DNA from: Bacillus subtilis subsp. subtilis str. 168 | Lineage (GTDB): Bacteria; Bacillota; Bacilli; Bacillales; Bacillaceae | NCBI RefSeq assembly: GCF_000009045.1 | Contig: NC_000964.3 | Span: forward strand, 992,001-1,056,000 | Length of the DNA: 64,000 nucleotides | Direction: 5' to 3' | Shown: positions 2-46,419 of the stretch, piece by piece | Layout of the letters: each line of letters begins with the position of its first letter | Position numbering within the stretch: position 1 is the stretch's first letter | Notes under the pieces: generated by a model | What the model was told of the DNA's origin: nothing | Seen by the model: the letters and a program-made list of their open reading frames with translations, nothing else | Databases searched by the model: none | Program-made: the position numbers and the translations under genes

Positions 2-3001
2 TCGCCATCCCCTGAACAATTTCCCGAATTAAAAGAGGGTATGGATGTCACGGTGACAGGGAAAATCACGTCTTACCAGGGGCTGAAAGAAATCGTTCCA
101 AACTCATCAGGCATCAAAATCAACCAGTCAAATCAATCCCTCCCCGCCCCCAAACACTTAACAATCAATGAACTTATTAACGGCAGCCTAGGTGATCAGT
201 ATGAAGGACGCCTTGTGAAACTAACCGCTTTTGTTTCCTCAATTCCAAGTTCTCCTGCCGGCGGCGGTTACAATGTAACAATGATTGATGACGACCATCA
301 TGCAATGACGCTCCGGGTTATGAATGAAACAGGGGTGATAAACGAGCTTGATGAGGGCAAATGGTATGAATTTACCGGTGTGTTAAGCAGATACCAAACC
401 TTTCAGCTGCTTCCGCGAAAATCGGCTGACCTGAAGCTGCTTGAAGAGCAGCCCGCACCTCCGTCTGCAGAGGGAGAATATGAAGGGATTGTTGACCGGG
501 TAGTTGACGGCGATACCATTCATCTTAAATCTCCGGTGCTTGGAACGACAAAAATCCGGTTTGTAAATGTAGATGCACCCGAAACATATCACACACCAAA
601 AAATGACGCAGATGAAAATCAATTAAGATTTGGCAAAAAAGCATCTGACTATCTAAAAACGGTTCTGTCCCCGGGTGATAAAATTACTGTCAAGGTCGGG
701 AGTGAAGCCAAGGACAGCTATGGCAGATTGCTCGGACAAGTCATAACCGAATCAGGTTCAAACGTGAACTTAGAGCTTGTAAAAAACGGCTATGCTCCGA
801 CGTATTTTATTTGGCCGGTTGACAATGAAGAGGATTATCAGCAATTTCAGGCCGCAGTAGCCGCTGCAAAAAAAGATCAAAAAGGAATTTGGAATGAAAA
901 CGATCCCCTCATGGAAATGCCGTTTGAATTCAGAGCCAGAGAGCAAGGGAAAGGCCTGACAAGATATGTGGGGGACTCGTCGAATAAAACATATGTGCAG
1001 CCAGCTGACTGGAAGAAGATAGCTGTGGAAAACAGAATTTTCTTCGCCTCAGCAAGTGAAGCGGAGAGCGCGGGATATAAAAAAAGGCAAACGGCACCTC
1101 AAGAACATGTGCCGCTTAGAATTCTCAGCATGAATGATTTGCATGGCAAAATCGATCAGCAATATGAGCTTGATCTTGATGGAAATGGAACTGTAGACGG
1201 CACGTTTGGACGCATGGATTATGCCGCCGCATATTTAAAAGAAAAAAAGGCTGAAAAGAAAAACTCGCTGATTGTGCACGCGGGAGATATGATCGGCGGA
1301 AGCTCTCCAGTTTCCTCTCTTCTTCAGGATGAACCGACTGTAGAACTGATGGAGGACATCGGATTTGATGTCGGAACCGTGGGAAACCACGAATTTGATG
1401 AAGGCACGGATGAACTTCTGAGGATCTTAAATGGCGGTGATCATCCGAAAGGCACAAGCGGATATGATGGACAGAACTTTCCCCTTGTATGTGCCAATTG
1501 TAAAATGAAATCAACTGGAGAGCCCTTTTTGCCGGCTTACGACATCATTAATGTGGAGGGCGTACCCGTTGCTTTTATCGGAGTTGTCACACAGTCGGCA
1601 GCTGGCATGGTTATGCCTGAAGGAATAAAAAATATCGAGTTTACAGATGAAGCAACAGCGGTGAATAAGGCGGCCGAAGAGCTCAAGAAAAAAGGCGTGA
1701 AGGCCATCGCGGTTCTCGCACATATGTCAGCTGAACAAAACGGCAACGCCATTACCGGTGAGTCTGCTGATCTTGCAAACAAAACAGATTCTGAAATTGA
1801 CGTGATTTTTGCCGCGCATAATCATCAGGTTGTTAACGGTGAAGTGAATGGAAAACTGATTGTTCAAGCGTTTGAATATGGAAAAGCGATAGGTGTCGTT
1901 GATGTAGAGATCGATAAAACGACAAAAGACATTGTCAAAAAGTCCGCGGAAATCGTATATGTTGATCAAAGTAAAATCGAACCGGATGTCAGCGCGTCAG
2001 CCATTTTAAAGAAATACGAAACAATTGCGGAACCGATTATCAGCGAGGTAGTCGGCGAAGCCGCTGTTGATATGGAAGGGGGGTATTCAAATGACGGCGA
2101 TACACCTCTTGGAAACCTGATTGCGGATGGTATGAGAGCTGCCATGAAAACGGATTTTGCCCTTATGAATGGCGGCGGCATACGTGAAGCGCTGAAGAAG
2201 GGTCCAATTACGTGGGGAGATCTTTACAATATTCAGCCGTTTGGAAATGTGTTAACGAAGCTTGAGATTAAAGGAAAAGATTTAAGAGAGATTATCAATG
2301 CGCAAATCTCGCCGGTTTTTGGGCCTGACTACAGCATCAGCGGGTTTACGTATACGTGGGATAAAGAAACCGGAAAAGCAGTTGATATGAAAATGGCAGA
2401 TGGCACCGAGATCCAGCCCGATGCCACATATACATTGACCGTCAACAACTTTATGGCGACGGCGACAGGAGCCAAATATCAGCCAATCGGACTGCTGGGA
2501 AAAAATCCGGTGACAGGGCCTGAGGATTTGGAAGCGACAGTTGAGTACGTGAAGAGTTTTGATGAGCCAATTGCGTATACAAAAGAGGGAAGAATTAAGC
2601 TTGCTGAAGCCAGTGATATTGAAGACCCTGTAACAGAAGACCCGATAACGGAAGAGCCTGGAGATGATCCGGGGACGGAGGATCCGATTAAAGAGGATCC
2701 AAGGCCAGGTGAAGATTTGCCTGATATAAAAGAAACTCCGGGAACAGCACCGGTTCATCAGCTTCCGCCTTCAGCCATTTCGAGATTCAATGAAATACCA
2801 ATCAACAACACAAAAACCGCTGATACTGCTAATAGCATCAGCACATTGCCGTTACAAACCGAGACTGCGGAAAGCGGGTCTGATCATCAGCTTCCGGATA
2901 CGTCAGCGGGCTACTATAACTTTATGGTAATCGGTGCGGCGGTGACATTGTCAGGAACTTATCTATATGTCAGAAGAAAAAGGAGCGCCTCCAGAACGTG
3001 A
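2..3001 (+). CDS. yhcR: Sortase-anchored extracellular sugar-nonspecific nuclease/5'-nucleotidase, 5' part outside window
   Basis: Frame is open from base 2. OB-fold, SNase domain (VVDGDT..IRFVNVDAPE), metallophosphoesterase motifs (DLHG, GNHE, AAHNH), 5'-nucleotidase C domain, then LPDTS + hydrophobic stretch + RRKR tail. Confidence 0.95.
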   Translation, partial: SPSPEQFPELKEGMDVTVTGKITSYQGLKEIVPNSSGIKINQSNQSLPAPKHLTINELINGSLGDQYEGRLVKLTAFVSSIPSSPAGGGYNVTMIDDDHHAMTLRVMNETGVINELDEGKWYEFTGVLSRYQTFQLLPRKSADLKLLEEQPAPPSAEGEYEGIVDRVVDGDTIHLKSPVLGTTKIRFVNVDAPETYHTPKNDADENQLRFGKKASDYLKTVLSPGDKITVKVGSEAKDSYGRLLGQVITESGSNVNLELVKNGYAPTYFIWPVDNEEDYQQFQAAVAAAKKDQKGIWNENDPLMEMPFEFRAREQGKGLTRYVGDSSNKTYVQPADWKKIAVENRIFFASASEAESAGYKKRQTAPQEHVPLRILSMNDLHGKIDQQYELDLDGNGTVDGTFGRMDYAAAYLKEKKAEKKNSLIVHAGDMIGGSSPVSSLLQDEPTVELMEDIGFDVGTVGNHEFDEGTDELLRILNGGDHPKGTSGYDGQNFPLVCANCKMKSTGEPFLPAYDIINVEGVPVAFIGVVTQSAAGMVMPEGIKNIEFTDEATAVNKAAEELKKKGVKAIAVLAHMSAEQNGNAITGESADLANKTDSEIDVIFAAHNHQVVNGEVNGKLIVQAFEYGKAIGVVDVEIDKTTKDIVKKSAEIVYVDQSKIEPDVSASAILKKYETIAEPIISEVVGEAAVDMEGGYSNDGDTPLGNLIADGMRAAMKTDFALMNGGGIREALKKGPITWGDLYNIQPFGNVLTKLEIKGKDLREIINAQISPVFGPDYSISGFTYTWDKETGKAVDMKMADGTEIQPDATYTLTVNNFMATATGAKYQPIGLLGKNPVTGPEDLEATVEYVKSFDEPIAYTKEGRIKLAEASDIEDPVTEDPITEEPGDDPGTEDPIKEDPRPGEDLPDIKETPGTAPVHQLPPSAISRFNEIPINNTKTADTANSISTLPLQTETAESGSDHQLPDTSAGYYNFMVIGAAVTLSGTYLYVRRKRSASRT

Positions 3002-38264: not shown

Positions 38265-39260
38265 ATGGAATATACCAGTATAGCAGATACAGGAATAGAA
38301 GCCTCCAGAATCGGCCTCGGCACATGGGCCATTGGCGGAACGATGTGGGGAGGCACTGACGAAAAAACATCGATTGAAACAATCCGCGCCGCTCTTGATC
38401 AGGGGATTACACTGATTGACACCGCACCGGCTTACGGCTTCGGGCAGTCCGAGGAAATTGTCGGAAAGGCAATCAAAGAGTACGGCAAAAGAGACCAGGT
38501 GATTCTCGCAACGAAAACGGCTCTGGACTGGAAGAACAACCAGCTGTTCCGCCATGCGAACAGAGCGAGAATTGTAGAGGAAGTTGAGAATTCTTTGAAG
38601 CGGCTTCAAACAGACTATATTGATCTTTATCAGGTGCATTGGCCCGATCCGCTTGTGCCAATTGAAGAAACGGCTGAAGTCATGAAGGAATTATATGATG
38701 CGGGAAAAATCCGGGCGATTGGCGTCAGCAATTTTTCAATTGAGCAAATGGATACATTTCGCGCCGTCGCACCTCTCCATACGATTCAGCCTCCATATAA
38801 TCTGTTTGAAAGAGAGATGGAAGAGAGTGTCCTTCCTTATGCGAAAGATAACAAGATAACAACATTATTATACGGCAGTTTATGCAGAGGGCTGTTAACA
38901 GGCAAAATGACTGAAGAATATACATTTGAGGGCGATGATCTGCGTAATCACGATCCAAAATTCCAGAAGCCCCGCTTTAAAGAGTATCTTTCTGCTGTGA
39001 ATCAATTGGATAAGCTGGCGAAGACACGTTATGGAAAATCAGTGATTCACTTGGCTGTCAGATGGATCTTAGATCAGCCGGGAGCGGATATCGCTCTTTG
39101 GGGAGCAAGAAAGCCTGGGCAGCTTGAGGCCCTATCTGAGATTACAGGCTGGACGCTGAACAGTGAAGATCAGAAAGATATCAATACTATATTGGAAAAT
39201 ACGATATCAGACCCTGTCGGACCGGAGTTTATGGCCCCGCCGACCAGAGAGGAAATATAA
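38265..39260 (+). CDS. yhdN: General-stress aldo-keto reductase
   Basis: GLGTW, DTAPAYG, LATK and YQVHWPD motifs. Confidence 0.94.
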   Translation: MEYTSIADTGIEASRIGLGTWAIGGTMWGGTDEKTSIETIRAALDQGITLIDTAPAYGFGQSEEIVGKAIKEYGKRDQVILATKTALDWKNNQLFRHANRARIVEEVENSLKRLQTDYIDLYQVHWPDPLVPIEETAEVMKELYDAGKIRAIGVSNFSIEQMDTFRAVAPLHTIQPPYNLFEREMEESVLPYAKDNKITTLLYGSLCRGLLTGKMTEEYTFEGDDLRNHDPKFQKPRFKEYLSAVNQLDKLAKTRYGKSVIHLAVRWILDQPGADIALWGARKPGQLEALSEITGWTLNSEDQKDINTILENTISDPVGPEFMAPPTREEI

Positions 39261-39261
39261 C

Positions 39262-39290
39262 AAAAGCTGAGGGCGAATCCTCAGCTTTTT
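39262..39290 (+). terminator. Terminator after yhdN
   Basis: AAAAGCTGAGGGCGAATCCTCAGCTTTTT. Confidence 0.88.
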
Positions 39291-39394
39291 GGCGTTTAAA
39301 CGAGAGAAATCTTAAAAATTAGTACCAGGTAATAAAAAATATTGTTATAATAGATGACAGAAAGAATCATTGATTACGACAAAGGAAGTGCGAT

Positions 39395-39994
39395 ATGTAT
39401 AAGTTTTGTGCAAATGCTTTAAAAGTTATTCTTTCTCTTCGCGGAGGAGTGAAGGTGTATAACAAAGAAAACCTTCCGGCCGATTCAGGTTTTGTCATCG
39501 CGTGTACACATTCCGGCTGGGTTGATGTGATTACACTCGGAGTCGGGATTCTTCCTTATCAAATACACTACATGGCGAAAAAAGAGCTTTTTCAAAATAA
39601 ATGGATCGGTTCGTTTCTGAAGAAAATTCATGCCTTTCCGGTAGATCGGGAAAATCCCGGGCCAAGCAGTATTAAAACGCCGATTAAGCTGCTGAAAGAA
39701 GGAGAGATCGTCGGTATCTTCCCAAGCGGAACAAGAACCTCTGAGGATGTGCCTTTGAAAAGAGGTGCGGTGACGATTGCGCAAATGGGGAAAGCGCCGC
39801 TTGTCCCCGCTGCATATCAGGGCCCTTCAAGCGGAAAAGAATTATTCAAAAAAGGAAAAATGAAGCTGATTATCGGTGAGCCTCTTCACCAGGCTGATTT
39901 TGCCCACCTGCCTTCAAAGGAAAGACTTGCAGCAATGACAGAGGCTTTGAATCAGCGGATTAAAGAACTAGAGAATAAACTTGATCAGCTATAA
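39395..39994 (+). CDS. plsC: 1-acyl-sn-glycerol-3-phosphate acyltransferase
   Basis: HSGWVD (Hx4D) and FPSGTR motifs. Confidence 0.95.
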   Translation: MYKFCANALKVILSLRGGVKVYNKENLPADSGFVIACTHSGWVDVITLGVGILPYQIHYMAKKELFQNKWIGSFLKKIHAFPVDRENPGPSSIKTPIKLLKEGEIVGIFPSGTRTSEDVPLKRGAVTIAQMGKAPLVPAAYQGPSSGKELFKKGKMKLIIGEPLHQADFAHLPSKERLAAMTEALNQRIKELENKLDQL

Positions 39995-40029
39995 GGCGTT
40001 CTGAGAGATTGTCCTGAAACTGTGAAAAT

Positions 40030-40061
40030 AAGAAAAGCACCCTATACAAGGTGCTTTTCTT
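40030..40061. terminator. Bidirectional terminator plsC/yhdP
   Basis: AAGAAAAGCACC..GGTGCTTTTCTT. Confidence 0.85.
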
Positions 40062-40062
40062 A

Positions 40063-41397
40063 TTATGCTTCCTGCTGGTTAGCTGTCTCCAGAAGTTCTT
40101 CTTCTTGAAGCTTTTTCACTTCAATATATGCGACGTGGTGGCCGTCAATTTCATTAATGATGAATTCGCAGCCCTCTTCGATGATGGAATCATCTTTTTC
40201 AACATCGTATTTTTGAGTAAGGAACCAGCCGCCGATTGTATCGACTTCTTCGTTCTCTAAATGGATGCCTAGCAGGTCGTTTACTTGGTCAATTAACACT
40301 TTTCCGTCAAGAATATAATGGCCTTCGCCGATTTTGCGGATTTCGCTAATTTCATCAATATCAAATTCGTCGCGGATTTCACCGACAATTTCCTCAATGA
40401 TGTCCTCAACCGTCACAAGCCCGGCAGTACCGCCGTATTCATCAGACAAAATGGCCATGTGGACCCTCTCTTTTTGCATTTTGACAAGCAGGTCTTGGAT
40501 CGGCGCAGATTCAATGACATGAATGATAGGGTTGACGAATTGAGAAATGGTGGAATCAACAGATACCTCACCGCTGATGCAGGCGGTCAGCACTTCTTTA
40601 ATGTTAATAACCCCGATAATGTTATCTTTATCGCCCTCTTCCACAGGGTAGCGGGTATATTTTTCAATCTGAATGATGTCCATCATTTCAGAAATCTTGA
40701 TATCATGCGGAAGGCTGACAATTTCGGTCCGCGGAATCATAATTTCTTTCGCGAGCCTGTCGTCAAATTCAAAGATTTTATTCACATATTTAAACTCTGA
40801 TTGGTTGATTTCACCGCTTTTATAGCTTTCAGACAAAATGATTCGCAGCTCTTCTTCTGAGTGAGCCAGTTCGTTTTCTGAAACGGTCTCCAGGCCAAAT
40901 GCTTTGGTCAATAACCGTGCGGAATTGTTCAAAAGCCAAATGAATGGGAACGCGATGCGGTAAAACCAAATCAGCGGTTTCGCAAACAGCATAGACACTG
41001 CTTCCGCCTTTTGGATAGCGACTGTTTTAGGTGCAAGTTCTCCGACAACAACGTGTAAGAACGTGATAATGGCATACGCAAAAATAAACGATATGACATG
41101 TGAAAGGGAACCTGGAACGTTCATTTGGACGAAAAGCGGGTGAAGCAGCCTTTCGATCGTTGATTCACCTAAAACCCCTAATCCGATGGAAGTCAATGTA
41201 ATTCCGAGCTGACACGCAGATAAATATTCATCAAGATGCGTGGTCACTTTTTTTACGGCTATTGCTGCTTTATTTCCTTCCGCGATCAGCTGATCGATCC
41301 GTGAGCCTCTGATTCTGATAATGGCAAACTCAGATGCCACGAAAAATGCCGTCAGGGCGATTAAAACAGCAACTAAAATCAAATTCACTATGTCCAA
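40063..41397 (-). CDS. yhdP: CNNM/CorC-family (DUF21-CBS-CorC) Mg2+ efflux protein (MpfA)
   Basis: [20 protein letters not shown] and DEYGGTAG motifs; TTG start. Confidence 0.94.
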
Positions 41398-41457
41398 TTA
41401 GAACCTTCACTCTAGCAATGAGAATGAAGGTAACACCTCCTGTTAGATAAAATGGTT

Positions 41458-41889
41458 TTAACTTAACAGCAGCATAAATGATTGGAACACGGCGAGCTTT
41501 TCAGGCGGGAGTTTGCTTTTCAGCTTGTCACGATCCTCGGGCTTCAGCCGTTCAAACCGATGCAAGATTCCGGAGATGTTTTGATTCATATGATCAATTT
41601 CTAATGCCAGATTTCCAATTTCATCATCAAGTTTAGCTGAAGAGGGAAACTGGTTCTCCAGTCGATCTTTAATATCGGACAGGGCCAATCGCTGCTTCTT
41701 GCAATCTACAATAAATATAAGTCGTTTGAGTGCATTTTCGTCGTAGTAACGGTAATTTGAACAGGATCTGGCCGGCGTAAGCAGACCGAGATTCGTATAA
41801 TAATCAACTGTCCGTTTCGTTACTCCGGCGAGTGCCGCTAGTTCACTGATGCGATAAGTCTCAGCCCCATCTATATCCCTCCCAACCAT
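41458..41889 (-). CDS. yhdQ: MerR-family regulator (annotated cueR); translational start doubtful
   Basis: YRISELAALAGVTKRTVDYY..GLL MerR HTH; in-frame ATG 41889 has no SD (see findings). Confidence 0.8.
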   Translation of the reverse strand: MVGRDIDGAETYRISELAALAGVTKRTVDYYTNLGLLTPARSCSNYRYYDENALKRLIFIVDCKKQRLALSDIKDRLENQFPSSAKLDDEIGNLALEIDHMNQNISGILHRFERLKPEDRDKLKSKLPPEKLAVFQSFMLLLS

Positions 41890-42045
41890 CACGTTATAGT
41901 TATGAGAATAGTTTAATATATGAACGGTGTCTTGCACAAGTTTATTGTTTTTTTTAGACCGGAATTGGAAGTTGTGGAATTCATCATCTGATTGAAGTAA
42001 CATAGGAAGATAGAATTTTCAAATTTTTATATGCGGAAGGGACAG

Positions 42046-43227
42046 ATGAAATTGGCTGGGTTATCCCGGGAAGTTGAAGAAAACTTAAATAAAGGATCAT
42101 GGATTCGCAAGCTGTTTGATGAAGGTGCAAGGCTGAAGAAGGAGTTCGGGGAAGACCAGGTATTTGATTTTTCACTCGGCAACCCGATTGTTGAACCGCC
42201 TGAAGCTTTTAAGAGAGCGTTAATAGAGGAAGCTGAAAAAGGCAGCCACGGATACATACAAAACCAAGGGCTTCTTGCAGCGAGAGAAAAAGTCGCGCAA
42301 TTTCTGGGCTCGCGTTTTGAAGCTGATTTCTCAGCGGAGCGCATCGTCATGACGGTGGGCGCGGGAGGCGCTTTGAATGTTGCGTTAAAAAGCATCGTAA
42401 ACCCTGGGGAAGAGGTCATTATTCTTGCACCTTATTTTGCCGAATATAAGTTGTATATTGAGAACTACGGGGGAAAAGCCGTCAGCTGCCCGTTGACAAG
42501 CCGGTTTGAGATCGACATTGAAGCGGTAAGGCAATCGATCACTCCACAGACGAAAGGGCTGATTCTCAATACACCGCATAACCCCACAGGCACTGTTCTC
42601 AGCCAGAAAAATATAGACGATTTAGGCGCTTTATTAAAAGAAATAGAAGAGAAGAGCGGCCAGACGATTTATGTGCTGTTTGATGAACCGTACAGTCAAT
42701 TAATCTATGATGAAGAGCTGGCAAATCCGTTTCAATCGTACCATCGTGTGATATTGGCCAGCTCATTCAGTAAAGATCTCGGCATAGCCGGAGAGCGGCT
42801 CGGGTATATCGGATTGGACAGCCGAATGCCGGATGCGGACCTTTTGATCAACGCTTTTGTGTATTGTAATCGAACGCTTGGATTTGTGAATGCCCCTGTC
42901 ATGATGCAGCGGGCTGTGGCACGAATGGATGATTTAAGAGTAGACGCGAGCGCTTATAAAGAGCGCCGGGATTTAATGGTAGACATTTTAAAAGAAGCCG
43001 GTTTTGAATTTGAAATGCCAAAGGGAGGTTTCTTTGTTTTTCCGAAATCGCCGATTGAAGATGAAGTTGCATTTTGCGTGCATGCCGCCCAAAAATACAA
43101 ATTATTAATTGTGCCGAGCAGCGGTTTTGGAATGAGCGGGCATTTCCGATTATCCTTCAGTGTGCCGATCGAGCAGATTAAAAACTCACGGGACATTTTC
43201 ATTTCTTTATATAAAGATTTTGCTTAA
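42046..43227 (+). CDS. yhdR: Class I/II PLP aminotransferase (aspartate aminotransferase-like)
   Basis: [12 protein letters not shown] and [14 protein letters not shown] motifs. Confidence 0.93.
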
Positions 43228-43239
43228 GAAGGCAAAGAA

Positions 43240-43271
43240 AAGAAAACAGTTTTCAAGGCTGTTTTCTTTTT
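43240..43271 (+). terminator. Terminator after yhdR
   Basis: AAGAAAACAGT..GGCTGTTTTCTTTTT. Confidence 0.75.
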
Positions 43272-43377
43272 ATATCCGCAAAATCCTTCCTCTTCCAATC
43301 CAGACAGGCGCAGAATTGACAAGCAGGCATGCAGTTAAGGCTTTCTTCATGATAAAAGTCTAAAAATTAAAAATCAT
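43270..43377 (-). pseudogene. Possible degraded gene fragment (yhdS position)
   Basis: 36 codons with an internal stop (MIFNF*TFIMKK..); weak resemblance to the TlpA-like 'LNFWAT' segment, from memory only. Confidence 0.25.
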
Positions 43378-43553
43378 TTTTGGAATGAGTTGTGTTACAA
43401 TAAAATATACAATTTATAATCAAACTTTGACTTTTGGAGGTGGTATGATGGGGCCCTCTGCTTAGGCAACAATACACCGCGTACCTCAATGTTAAGGAAA
43501 AATGATTATATCAGGAGGTGACTCCTTATCCTTTGTTGAGAGGATAGGGTTAA

Positions 43554-44939
43554 ATGGACGATATTGACAGTCTGATTTTAATTGGCGTGCTCATTGCTTT
43601 AACCGCGTTTTTCGTTGCAAGCGAGTTTGCGATTGTTAGAGTGAGGAGATCCAGAATAGATCAGCTTATCACAGAAGGAAACAAACGGGCGATACTCGCA
43701 AGGCGTGTCATTACAGATTTGGATGAATATTTATCCGCATCCCAGCTAGGCATTACATTGACATCAATCGGGCTTGGCGTACTGGGTGAGCCGGCCTTTG
43801 AACGGCTGCTGCATCCACTGTTTGAACCGCTCGGCTTGCCGGACTCGGTTTCACATGCAGTCTCTTTTGCAGTCGCGTACGGCTTGATCACGTTCCTGCA
43901 CGTTGTTGTAGGTGAACTGGCCCCGAAAACGGTCGCGATTCAAAAGGCAGAACAGCTGACTTTACTGATAGCGGGCCCTTTGCGTTTATTCTATTTGCTC
44001 CTGTTTCCGTTTATTTGGATCCTCAATGGATCGGCGCGGCTTTTATGCGGGATGTTCGGTTTGAAGCCTGCGTCAGAACATGATGGTTCCCATTCTGAGG
44101 AAGAACTCAGGATGCTGTTATCTGAGAGTTTAAAAAACGGAGAGATTAATCCGTCTGAATATAAATATGTGAATAAGATTTTTGAATTTGATAATCGGAT
44201 CGCCAAAGAAATTATGATACCGCGGAAGGAAATGGCTGCTGTGTCAACTGAGATGACGATGGCCGAGATGCTTGAAGTCATGCTGAAGGAAAAATACACG
44301 CGCTGGCCAGTCACAGATGGAGACAAAGACAGTGTGCTCGGTTTGGTCAATACGAAGCATTTGTTTTCTGATTTGCTGTTTATGACAGAAGAAGAACGAA
44401 TGAAGATGACGATCCATCCGTATGTGAGGCCGGTCATCGAAGTGATTGAAACGATCCCGGTTCATGACTTGCTGATTAAAATGCAGCGCGAGCGCATTCA
44501 TATGGCTATATTGTCGGATGAATACGGAGGAACCTCGGGACTTGTGACGACAGAGGATATTCTTGAGGAAATTGTCGGAGAGATCCGAGATGAATTTGAT
44601 GAAGATGAACAGCCGCTGATCCAAAAGCTTGGCGACGGCCATTATGTGATGGATGGAAAGGTTCGGATCGATCAGGTGAACAGCCTTCTTGGCGCATCGA
44701 TTCAAGAAGACGTCGATACGATCGGCGGGCTGATATTAAAAGAAAACATCGATATTGAGGCTGGTGAATCCATTCGCATCGGTTCATATACGATAAAGGT
44801 GCTGAAGATGGACGGCCGATTAATCAAGCAAATCGATATAAAAGAAGAAGCCGGCAACACAACCGGGATTACGGCGCACCACAAGCTGCCGCTGCCCGAG
44901 CCTGTGATGCTGAACAGTGCAACCTTGAGCGAGAAATAA
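43554..44939 (+). CDS. yhdT: CNNM/CorC-family transporter, paralogue of yhdP
   Basis: Same DUF21-CBS-CorC motifs as yhdP. Confidence 0.94.
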   Translation: MDDIDSLILIGVLIALTAFFVASEFAIVRVRRSRIDQLITEGNKRAILARRVITDLDEYLSASQLGITLTSIGLGVLGEPAFERLLHPLFEPLGLPDSVSHAVSFAVAYGLITFLHVVVGELAPKTVAIQKAEQLTLLIAGPLRLFYLLLFPFIWILNGSARLLCGMFGLKPASEHDGSHSEEELRMLLSESLKNGEINPSEYKYVNKIFEFDNRIAKEIMIPRKEMAAVSTEMTMAEMLEVMLKEKYTRWPVTDGDKDSVLGLVNTKHLFSDLLFMTEEERMKMTIHPYVRPVIEVIETIPVHDLLIKMQRERIHMAILSDEYGGTSGLVTTEDILEEIVGEIRDEFDEDEQPLIQKLGDGHYVMDGKVRIDQVNSLLGASIQEDVDTIGGLILKENIDIEAGESIRIGSYTIKVLKMDGRLIKQIDIKEEAGNTTGITAHHKLPLPEPVMLNSATLSEK

Positions 44940-44952
44940 GCTCAAGGTTTTT

Positions 44953-45309
44953 TTATATTGTGATTGTCCAGCCGCACCAAAATGCAAAAAGCGACCCGCA
45001 AAGTGTCAGGACGATGTACAAGATGCTTTCTTTTACACGTTTGGCCATAAGGAGTTGAATAGTTTCAACGCTGAATGTGGAAAAGGTCGTAAAGGCGCCA
45101 AAAAACCCCGTGCCAATGATAAGCGAGACCGAAGCATTTGCAACGTGAAGTCCTGTAAATATTCCGAGCCCGAGAGCTCCGAGAATATTGACTGTCAGTA
45201 TGCCAATGGGCAGGCTGAGACCTTTGGTTTTGGCGGTTATGACATTGCCAAGCCAGAAGCGAAGCATTGCGCCAAGTCCGCCCCCTATGAAAATACCCGC
45301 TAGTGTCAT
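44953..45309 (-). CDS. yhdU: Fluc/CrcB fluoride channel subunit
   Basis: GGGLGAMLR and [12 protein letters not shown] motifs. Confidence 0.92.
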
Positions 45310-45701
45310 TTTTCCTGCAGCCCCTTTCTTTGCTGAATGCCTGCTATGCGCCGTCCCACAAAAACACCAATCAGTGCAAATATGATCCCTGATATCAATG
45401 AGGCTGCCACATATAAAAGAGCCAATGAGGGTTGTCCTTGCAAAAGCATCACTGTTTCCTTAGAAAACGTGGACATTGTTGTGAAGCCTCCGCAAAAGCC
45501 GGTGCCTAAAAAAGCCGACAGCAGAGGCCGTTTTGCCCCGATCATAAAAAATCCGGTCAAAATGCCTAATAGAAGGCTGCCTGCCGCATTTTCCAGCCAG
45601 GTTGCCGCCGGGAACTGACCGGTGTGTATCCATAAGTTTAATCCGTATCGGAGGCAGGCGCCAAGCGCGCCTCCGATAAAAACCGCGCTATATATTTTCA
45701 T
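45306..45701 (-). CDS. yhdV: Fluc/CrcB fluoride channel subunit
   Basis: GGALGACLR and [12 protein letters not shown] motifs; overlaps both neighbours. Confidence 0.92.
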
Positions 45702-46419
45702 GTTTGCCATCCTTTATGATGAAATCCGGGTAATCTGTAACGATGCCGTCCACGCCCATGGCTTGTAATTTTGCCGCTGTCTTTTGATTGTTGACAGTCC
45801 ATGCAAATATGTTTAAGCCATTTTTATTGATGGAGCCGATCATCAGACGGTTAAGCCGTGTGTGTTTTATATTGACATAGTTTGCAAAAGAGCGGAAGGC
45901 CTTCATCTGATTTCTGGACAGCATGCCAAAGTTGGGCCTTGTAATGACCGCTGTCGGAATCGAAGGATAAAGCTCGCGGAACCTTTGGACGGAGCGGAAC
46001 TGAAAGGATTGAACAATATTATTGATAGAAAAAGAAAATTGCCCTAATAGCTGTCCCACCTCTTCTTCAATTCCGACTTGAGACGGATGGCCTTTTAGTT
46101 CAATTAAAAGGCCGATTTTTTTGTGGTAGCGCTTGAGCACCGCTTCCAGGGTTGGAATACGCTCTCCTTGAAAAGCGGGACCGTACCAGCTTCCTGCATC
46201 GAGTTTTTGCAATTCCTCCAAGGTAAAATCCTTAACAAAGCCCGATCCGTTTGTTGTTCGGTCAACCCTGTCATCGTGTATCACAACAATCTGCCTGTCT
46301 TTTGTAAGCTGGACATCCAGTTCGATCATATCTGCATTCATTTTCACCGCAAGGTCAAATGCGGCAATCGTATTTTCCGGAGCGTAGCCGGATGCTCCGC
46401 GATGGGCAATGATGTACAA
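45688..46419 (-). CDS. yhdW: Glycerophosphodiester phosphodiesterase family protein
   Basis: AHRGASGYAPENT, IELDV and HD motifs. Confidence 0.93.
   Translation of the reverse strand: MYIIAHRGASGYAPENTIAAFDLAVKMNADMIELDVQLTKDRQIVVIHDDRVDRTTNGSGFVKDFTLEELQKLDAGSWYGPAFQGERIPTLEAVLKRYHKKIGLLIELKGHPSQVGIEEEVGQLLGQFSFSINNIVQSFQFRSVQRFRELYPSIPTAVITRPNFGMLSRNQMKAFRSFANYVNIKHTRLNRLMIGSINKNGLNIFAWTVNNQKTAAKLQAMGVDGIVTDYPDFIIKDGKHENI

Follow-up and report, generated by a model that had tools for sequence, protein, structure and literature searches.

How does translation begin on a gene whose only strong Shine-Dalgarno (SD) sequence appears to lie far beyond the usual distance from the start codon? The question is raised by a locus in a stretch of 64,000 nucleotides (nt) of the Bacillus subtilis subsp. 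subtilis str. 168 chromosome (NC_000964.3, positions 992,001 to 1,056,000 of the forward strand; the whole of this stretch is referred to below as the window, and coordinates count from its first letter). Here the yhdT-type gene, a paralogue of the gene for the Mg2+ exporter MpfA/YhdP (PMC8844918), is preceded by a strong SD, a stable hairpin and, directly after a short linker, the start codon. The reading we favour, to which we assign a probability of roughly 60%, is that this leader is a hairpin-bridged, or "split," ribosome-binding site, in which the hairpin would loop out most of the spacer between SD and start. The leader and gene are composed as follows.

43512-43520, plus strand: 9-nt upstream segment CAGGAGGTG, by direct reading
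43514-43521, plus strand: distal SD GGAGGTGA of the yhdT-type gene, 32 nt 5' of the ATG
43522-43523, plus strand: 5' junction CT between SD duplex and hairpin (the last two letters of ACT, 43521-43523)
43524-43549, plus strand: spacer hairpin of the yhdT-type gene, 11 base pairs (bp), two of them G-U
43524-43534, plus strand: 5' arm of the hairpin, CCTTATCCTTT
43535-43538, plus strand: hairpin loop, GTTG
43539-43549, plus strand: 3' arm of the hairpin, AGAGGATAGGG
43550-43553, plus strand: 3' linker TTAA from hairpin to start codon, by direct reading
43554-44939, plus strand: yhdT-type CNNM/CBS/CorC_HlyC transporter gene, 461 amino acids, ATG at 43554-43556 followed by GAC

The anatomy had been read from the letters by a first-pass annotation, and on this point sequence and folding agree: ViennaRNA reproduces the 11-pair stem with its two G-U pairs, and of the 33 nt that separate CAGGAGGTG from the ATG only 7 (ACT plus TTAA) are unpaired. 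Folded alone, the hairpin has a free energy (dG) of -14.7 kcal/mol, and the predicted duplex of the distal SD with the 3' tail of 16S rRNA at this site reaches -16.0 kcal/mol; these and all energies below are nearest-neighbour predictions. The 461-residue product carries the Pfam domains CNNM, CBS and CorC_HlyC, and its orthologues at 25 loci (L001-L025) align to it across residues 1-461.

A second leader of one and the same layout, SD, hairpin and start codon, lies on the opposite strand at the yhdP/mpfA-type paralogue, whose homologues are named hemolysin family or HlyC/CorC family transporter.

41434-41440, minus strand: distal SD GGAGGTG of the yhdP/mpfA-type gene, 16S-tail duplex -14.2 kcal/mol
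41404-41430, minus strand: spacer hairpin of the yhdP/mpfA-type gene, CCTTCATTCT, loop CATTGCT, AGAGTGAAGG, by direct reading
40063-41397, minus strand: yhdP/mpfA-type CNNM transporter gene, 444 amino acids, TTG start at 41397-41395

Its parts follow in the order GGAGGTG, TTA, CCTTCATTCT, CATTGCT, AGAGTGAAGG, TTCTAA and TTG, and the hairpin, of 11 bp if the flanking A-U pair is counted, has a dG of -13.5 kcal/mol. The two stems had been described as unrelated in sequence. Both begin with CCTT and end with AGG, however, and they are therefore better regarded as diverged homologues than as independent inventions. A third B. subtilis paralogue, yrkA, extends the recurrence that had been noted for yhdP and yhdT, its leader reading GGAGGTG TAC GCCTTAC TAA GTAAGGC AAATCA TTG.

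Taken by itself, the 66-nt fold of the yhdT leader stands out only modestly (z -2.0, with 11 of 200 shuffles folding equally well). That modest score, together with a simple terminator scan that flagged small stems of 5-6 bp between SD and 5' arm, is what can be said for a chance hairpin or a terminator or attenuator remnant of the upstream gene. However, no U-tract follows the main hairpin, the letters there being UUAAAUG or GAACUUAUUUG, and the upstream genes differ among loci; the conservation of the hairpin, with covariation, across at least four families of the Bacillales refutes this explanation and leaves it next to no probability. Within the window, 78 GGAGG sites were found, and at only two of them does a strong hairpin (-13.5 and -14.7 kcal/mol) end 4-5 nt before the start of a long open reading frame (ORF); a loose filter on the same sites also passed two weaker hairpins, of -8.9 and -9.4 kcal/mol.

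A covariance model, a check that the first-pass annotation had proposed, was trained on 42 yhdP-type leaders with a hand-given structure. In the 64 kb it finds just two sites, the yhdP leader (a member of the training set; match at 41389-41444, E 3e-7) and the yhdT leader, which lay outside the training set (E 9e-6), the third-ranked match having an E of 2.3; E-values of such a home-made model are rough. Across 349 kb of loci its matches are CNNM leaders only; among them are the yhdP leaders that the licheniformis, pumilus and atrophaeus groups have upstream of yhdT, in divergent orientation. A mixed alignment made with MAFFT and RNAalifold (A2) gave a poor consensus, because yhdP-type stems have a 3' bulge and yhdT-type stems lack it, and was replaced by alignments A3, with a hand-given structure, and A4. 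In A4, which holds 79 distinct leaders, 92.7% of cells are standard pairs, changes on both sides occur at 9 of the 11 pairs (137 such cells), and the covariation score is 0.489 against 0.203 for column shuffles (none of 500 reach it) and no more than 0.114 for slid registers. A4 was fitted to the covariance model and so leans towards structure. The signal nevertheless holds in an alignment-free check on 81 distinct spacers, where the median dG is -12.9 kcal/mol, the median z against dinucleotide shuffles is -3.6 and 94% have a z below -2; the raw sequences agree as well. These comparative sequence data confirm that the hairpin element is beyond chance, and they support selection on the structure independently of the stem sequence, as had been suggested from the two window paralogues.

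The layout is conserved well beyond B. subtilis. A scan of genome contigs yielded 80 loci, about 29 of them yhdT orthologues (subtilis, amyloliquefaciens, licheniformis and pumilus groups) and the remainder yhdP-like and from other Bacillaceae, where TTG is the start codon in nearly every case. In this first round GGAGGTG lies 29-42 nt before the start in 82 of 82 leaders, and each of the 82 spacers folds to a hairpin of 9-12 bp with a dG of -10 to -17 kcal/mol; in 64 of 64 aligned leaders the GGAGGTG is invariant. The set was extended to 88 distinct leaders from Bacillus, Priestia, the B. cereus group, Listeria, Brochothrix, Sporosarcina, Brevibacillus, Niallia and the yrkA gene of B. subtilis, with distant relatives drawn from PLSDB "plasmids" that are really chromosomes or chromosome fragments. 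All 88 keep the GGAGGTG, a junction of 5-6 nt, a hairpin of 15-29 nt and a further 4-8 nt before the start. The layout precedes Priestia genes (plasmid-borne and in a 1.08-Mb PLSDB record), three B. cereus-group genes, one Listeria monocytogenes gene whose product is 60% identical to YhdP, a Sporosarcina plasmid gene, a Brevibacillus laterosporus gene and a Niallia gene, and the covariance model recovers most of the distant leaders (yrkA, Priestia, B. cereus group, Listeria and others). In Listeria aquatica, L. weihenstephanensis and Brochothrix, reached through protein look-ups, the spacer is always 40 nt (about 5 + 29 + 6), a length shared by three Listeria species and Brochothrix, and their stems and that of L. 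monocytogenes have nothing in common among them; within Listeria the stem has been fully replaced while the proteins stay 86-89% identical. Such repeated replacement of a stem with the layout kept is close to the strongest comparative evidence that could be had for initiation across a folded hairpin.

The element thus spans at least four families of the Bacillales (Bacillaceae, Listeriaceae, Planococcaceae and Paenibacillaceae) and three B. subtilis paralogues. It had been proposed to be family-wide for CorC/CNNM exporters, and here the survey of paralogues and orthologues cut both ways: yrkA, Listeria and others carry the layout, but ten distant CNNM homologues, with at most 46% identity, have no hairpin and an ordinary SD 6-12 nt before the start. 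These ten (L083, L084, L085, L094, L096, L097, L098 and L102-L104) represent Bacilli and Clostridia, namely Staphylococcus pasteuri, Pontibacillus, Cytobacillus spongiae, Clostridium estertheticum, Paraclostridium, Paenibacillus cellulosilyticus and a second paralogue of Listeria, together with three unplaced metagenome contigs from a viral-contig scan. The homologues that bear the element share at least 46% identity and are compatible with one clade in a protein tree that is poorly resolved at depth and forces no more than one origin of the element. As far as these sequences go, then, the element marks one clade within the Bacillales, that of yhdP-, yhdT- and yrkA-like genes, and not the whole CNNM family; the B. 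subtilis paralogues covered are yhdP, yhdT and yrkA, and protein searches aimed also at yqhB and yugS of B. subtilis and at mpfA of Staphylococcus returned close Bacillaceae and Listeria relatives only.

What is held constant in these leaders is the single-stranded part. In the model alignment of 79 leaders, the end of GGAGG is separated from the stem base by 5 nt in 74 and by 6 nt in the other 5, the hairpin takes up 15-29 nt, the 3' linker 4-8 nt, and the two linkers together 9-13 nt. The hairpin has 7-16 bp, mostly 9-12, and the distance from the end of GGAGG to the start codon ranges over 26-42 nt among the 81 distinct spacers. The looped-out part is free to vary and the single-stranded parts are constrained. 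The geometry had been called identical between paralogues; this is true of the 5' junction, 5-6 nt after GGAGG, and not of the 3' linker with its range of 4-8 nt.

The distal SD is also the only strong one. Paired with the 3' tail of B. subtilis 16S rRNA, it reaches a median of -16.0 kcal/mol, against a median of -6.2 kcal/mol for the best proximal duplex (positions -20 to -3), even with the pairing of the latter in the stem ignored. The proximal value falls to about -3 kcal/mol in Priestia, yrkA and a B. thuringiensis plasmid gene (down to -2.8 in some lineages) and to -0.6 in L. aquatica, whereas the ordinary leaders of the distant paralogues have proximal duplexes of -9.3 to -15.0 kcal/mol. 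A few leaders do reach about -11 proximally (the window yhdT at -11.1 and L101 at -11.0), so the absence of a competent proximal SD is not absolute. The proximal sequence in the 3' arm was considered as the real SD and rejected, being too weak and missing in several lineages. The start codon is UUG in 57 of the 81 distinct spacers.

Could the distal SD instead serve a reading frame of its own? A start codon 4-12 nt after it is absent in 82 of the 88 leaders and present in 6, so it serves no leader peptide. Coupling through a mini-ORF or a start-stop overlap was rejected as well, given that conservation is lacking for the UUG codons which the two window hairpins have in their loops and that no start stands at SD distance from the distal SD, as was coupling to a leader peptide or upstream ORF, for which a conserved stop beside the main start is lacking. 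The codon directly before the main start is a stop in 33 of the 88 leaders and TAT in 39, and the TAA that had been taken for part of the element is accordingly dropped, both as such and as a functional stop. Likewise, the GAC after the start (72 of 88) is the codon of a conserved Asp2 in the protein and not a feature of the RNA.

Several of the marks by which a split ribosome-binding site may be recognized are therefore present together: an SD more than about 20 nt away, a stable hairpin in the spacer and a residual spacing of 9-13 nt, within the working range; an SD and a start codon that both lie outside the hairpin, no competent proximal SD, and compensatory change among relatives. On the favoured reading, the only strong SD, GGAGGUG(A), 26-42 nt upstream, would be far too distant to be used on linear RNA. 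The 30S subunit would pair the 3' tail of its 16S rRNA with this distal SD while the hairpin remained folded, looping out 15-29 nt and leaving 9-13 single-stranded nt between SD and start, and the start codon, mostly a weak UUG, would thereby be placed in the P site. The hairpin would be a positive, spacing-correcting part of the initiation region, so that we infer initiation through the distal SD with the hairpin folded and stimulating, not inhibiting, translation. Among the explanations considered, the split site is the best supported, as it explains a fixed geometry combined with a free stem sequence better than its rivals do.

One of these rivals keeps the SD and gives it another task. In Bacillus, STAB-SD elements such as that of cryIIIA are SD-like sequences of this kind, and a perfect SD far from the start, conserved in 100% of leaders, might act here as a stabiliser of the mRNA, with a bound 30S subunit or the hairpin blocking 5'-to-3' decay and translation starting from weak proximal signals. 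A stabiliser, however, would need neither a fixed junction of 5-6 nt nor a hairpin that always ends 4-8 nt before the start. The proximal SDs on which translation would depend are weak or absent, and UUG starts, the majority here, depend on a strong SD in Bacillus. We consider this explanation distinctly unlikely.

The points that weigh against the split site concern its spacing and the freedom of its SD. The optimum spacing in B. subtilis is 7-9 nt, and the effective spacing here, 9-13 nt plus the base of the helix, is longer. In most Bacillaceae the 5' arm begins with CUCCUU, resembling the 16S tail, and can pair with the SD, the alternative helix AGGAG/CUCCU being closed by a GUGA loop. For the half-made transcript, the predicted fold of 74 out of 80 leaders ties up at least 3 of the 5 GGAGG bases in pairs with the 5' arm, at a median of about -6.9 kcal/mol; in the minimum free energy (MFE) fold of the whole yhdT leader, AGGAG pairs with CUCCU and the main hairpin next to it is shortened; and the predicted probability that GGAGG is fully unpaired has a median of just 0.03. 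In many yhdP-type leaders, moreover, the UAAGGGA of the 3' arm amounts to a weak SD at the normal distance from the start. This predicted pairing of SD and 5' arm leaves room for a switch or a repressive role.

The corresponding rival holds that the hairpin is repressive and hides a weak proximal SD in its 3' arm, the distal SD being either a standby landing pad or itself sequestered by the 5' arm; in a switching version, the leader would toggle on a signal such as Mg2+, temperature, a protein or the state of the ribosome. Besides the nascent-fold pairing and the MFE fold just described, it can draw on the likeness of CUCCUU to the 16S tail and of UAAGG(G/A)A to an SD that ends about 5-8 nt before the yhdP-type start. 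The best structure with a free SD is a median of only 1.9 kcal/mol above the MFE, a cost that this rival may count in its favour but that, like the energies of the alternative pairings in general, is small compared with the -16 kcal/mol of SD:16S pairing. The full hairpin, at -12 to -17 kcal/mol, is far more stable than the helix of SD and 5' arm (-3 to -7 kcal/mol), and melting it would leave the distal SD 26-42 nt from the start. Nor do all leaders have the CCUU/AAGG stem base, other stems being found in L. aquatica, L. weihenstephanensis, Brochothrix, Priestia and yrkA; L. aquatica is without any proximal SD (the -0.6 kcal/mol given above), and the AAGG of the yhdT type ends just 4 nt before the ATG. 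The CUCCUU motif is missing in Listeria, Brochothrix, Priestia and yrkA and so cannot be the core of the mechanism, for which reason anti-SD mimicry was also rejected as a defining feature. The bias of the stems towards pyrimidines in the 5' and purines in the 3' arm can be explained by descent with compensatory changes of the transition type and was not counted as evidence. A repressive or switching hairpin is possible, if a good deal less probable than the split site.

Less probable again, though built on the split site and not opposed to it, is the proposal that the bridged site directly senses free Mg2+ or the state of the ribosome, for example its occupancy by bS21. Initiation would require the folded hairpin to pack against the SD:anti-SD helix on the 30S platform and would use a weak UUG start, so that its efficiency could depend unusually steeply on either; the hairpin base of most Bacillaceae is, in addition, itself a mimic of an SD:anti-SD duplex. 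Were this so, more of the Mg2+ exporters MpfA, YhdT and YrkA would be made exactly when cytoplasmic Mg2+ rises, through a feedback loop inside the ribosome-binding site that uses neither a protein nor an aptamer. This proposal we hold to be rather unlikely.

A ligand-binding riboswitch or an RNA thermometer might be suspected behind any conserved leader structure of metal-transporter genes, and the 145-nt leader of yhdT is long (PMC2965217). However, the leaders have no conserved unpaired nucleotides, loops and inner stems varying freely, and no Rfam match is found at the site. For a thermometer, SD and start codon would both be misplaced outside the main hairpin, and stems of -12 to -17 kcal/mol at 37 °C are estimated to be too stable to melt at growth temperatures. 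Either is very improbable. The first-pass annotation had spoken of a cis-regulatory RNA element; the data fit a structural part of the ribosome-binding site, and it is the structure, not the regulation, that they bear out.

The yhdT leader holds a second conserved element. Irnov et al. (2010; PMC2965217) count the gene among those with long 5' leaders and give 145 nt for it, which would put the transcription start near 43409. About 90-120 nt 5' of the ATG, at 43436-43465 (plus strand), the sequence reads GGAGGTGGT ATG ATG GGG CCC TCT GCT TAG, that is, a strong SD and a mini-ORF of 5-6 codons, (M)MGPSx-stop. From the subtilis group to the pumilus group no change is seen in the SD, in GGGGCCCTC or in the TAG, and codon 5 is variable at all positions. 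The pattern occurs at 23 loci, all of the yhdT type, with one match in the window against none expected. The element may encode a leader peptide, perhaps a Gly-Pro-Ser stalling peptide, or may form an SD:CCUC hairpin.

A gene for a MerR-family regulator (Pfam MerR_1; 41461-42003, minus strand) lies directly upstream of the yhdP-type gene on the same strand, and a MerR-family gene likewise stands upstream of the CNNM gene on a Sporosarcina plasmid (L088, 1-168) and in Cytobacillus spongiae (L085, 1-286); at other CNNM loci the upstream neighbour is a CorA gene (L093) or a cation-diffusion-facilitator gene (L100). These upstream genes suggest a recurrent linkage of CNNM genes with metal homeostasis. 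In the window, an aminotransferase gene (42031-43227) separates the yhdP-type and yhdT-type genes. The atrophaeus, licheniformis and pumilus groups have only about 600-950 nt between the yhdT start and the yhdP-type leader, which is upstream of it and on the other strand (divergent near-neighbour pairs at L008, L012-L014, L016, L018-L020, L025, L029 and L035, at about 530-920, minus strand), and the aminotransferase gene seems to be absent between the two.

Some of the surveyed loci call for separate comment. On a plasmid of Paenibacillus sp. IHB B 3084 (L095, about 154-246), a CNNM gene of 44% identity is preceded by GAAGGAGGTG and then a hairpin of -19 kcal/mol, after which a TTG (223) occurs 21 nt upstream of the annotated ATG (244). 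The case is ambiguous, either the annotated start being wrong or the layout a variant; in the tree the gene groups with those that have an ordinary SD. Among the PLSDB records that are really chromosomal (L086, NZ_CP035192.1; L087, NZ_CP030101.1; L089, NZ_CP093325.1) are one of 2.9 Mb from Listeria, one of 5.5 Mb from Bacillus and a 46-kb linear piece of B. subtilis. In the last of these the yrkA frame stops after 136 amino acids and matches in two pieces, the gene being either broken or mis-sequenced in that strain. Just downstream of a Priestia megaterium CNNM gene (L091, 1671-1818, plus strand) there is a partial match to the HEARO RNA (RF02033; E 4e-11; 63.6 bits, below the 83 required for gathering), truncated where the locus ends.

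If the leader is a split site, its layout would mark the true start codons of these CNNM genes, most of them UUG, and would explain why gene finders and ribosome-binding-site calculators would score such genes as lacking an SD. The compact covariance model could be used for genome-wide scans. The layout also raises the question of how the synthesis of MpfA, the main Mg2+ efflux system, and of its paralogues is set. The element does not belong to an existing Rfam family: scans against Rfam 15 gave no match at the leaders in 39000-46000 at E up to 10, nor at those of seven other loci at E up to 1. Full-text literature searches turned up neither an account of the element nor one of how translation of mpfA, yhdT or yrkA is controlled, and no conserved cellular hairpin-bridged site; the only "split" sites among their results were those of the phage T4 genes and of the differently organized thrS operator of Escherichia coli.

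Among systems that resemble the leader in part, the STAB-SD of Bacillus thuringiensis cryIIIA shares with it a perfect SD-like sequence in a Bacillus 5' leader, far from the start. STAB-SD stands in no set spatial relation to a start codon, and initiation is not directed by it, whereas here SD, hairpin and start are fixed relative to one another and a second strong SD is lacking. In E. coli thrS, SD and AUG are reportedly adjacent and a hairpin separates them from an upstream single-stranded standby segment. The hairpin described here, unlike that of thrS, lies between the SD and the start codon. What the two have in common, as far as the account in PMC3936740 goes, is the principle of the thrS "split ribosome binding site" (Sacerdot et al., 1998), namely that the ribosome accommodates a hairpin between two single-stranded segments that it contacts. 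The hairpin base CUCCUU/AAGG(G) of most Bacillaceae recalls the P6 helix of OLE RNA, an SD:anti-SD mimic bound by bS21 (PMC12054373), but this mimic sequence, absent from the Listeria, Brochothrix, Priestia and yrkA versions, does not define the element.

The closest counterparts are genes 38 and 25 of phage T4, on which the concept of a hairpin-bridged ribosome-binding site essentially rests. According to the review in PMC3014915, which draws on the primary work of Nivinskas et al. (1999) and Malys and Nivinskas (2009), a hairpin reduces the SD-AUG spacing from 22 to 5 nt in gene 38 and from 27 to 11 nt in gene 25, and mutations that destabilize the stem lower translation. As these genes are summarized there, the likeness is close: the SD is too far away, at 22 and 27 nt in T4 and at 26-42 nt here; the spacer is taken up by a stable hairpin, which leaves a residual spacing of 5 and 11 nt in T4 and of 9-13 nt here; and the structure persists among close relatives but is missing from distant ones. 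Function was established by mutagenesis and probing in T4, as reported in the same review, whereas here we infer it from comparison. Unlike the T4 genes, which belong to a phage of E. coli, those described here are cellular genes of Gram-positive bacteria, with conservation across an order and three paralogues in one genome, and their leaders have an extended GGAGGUG(A), a nearly invariant junction to the stem and mostly a UUG start. To judge from these sequences, the leader would be a cellular representative, widespread and conserved to great depth, of a device for which two phage genes have so far been the documented cases.

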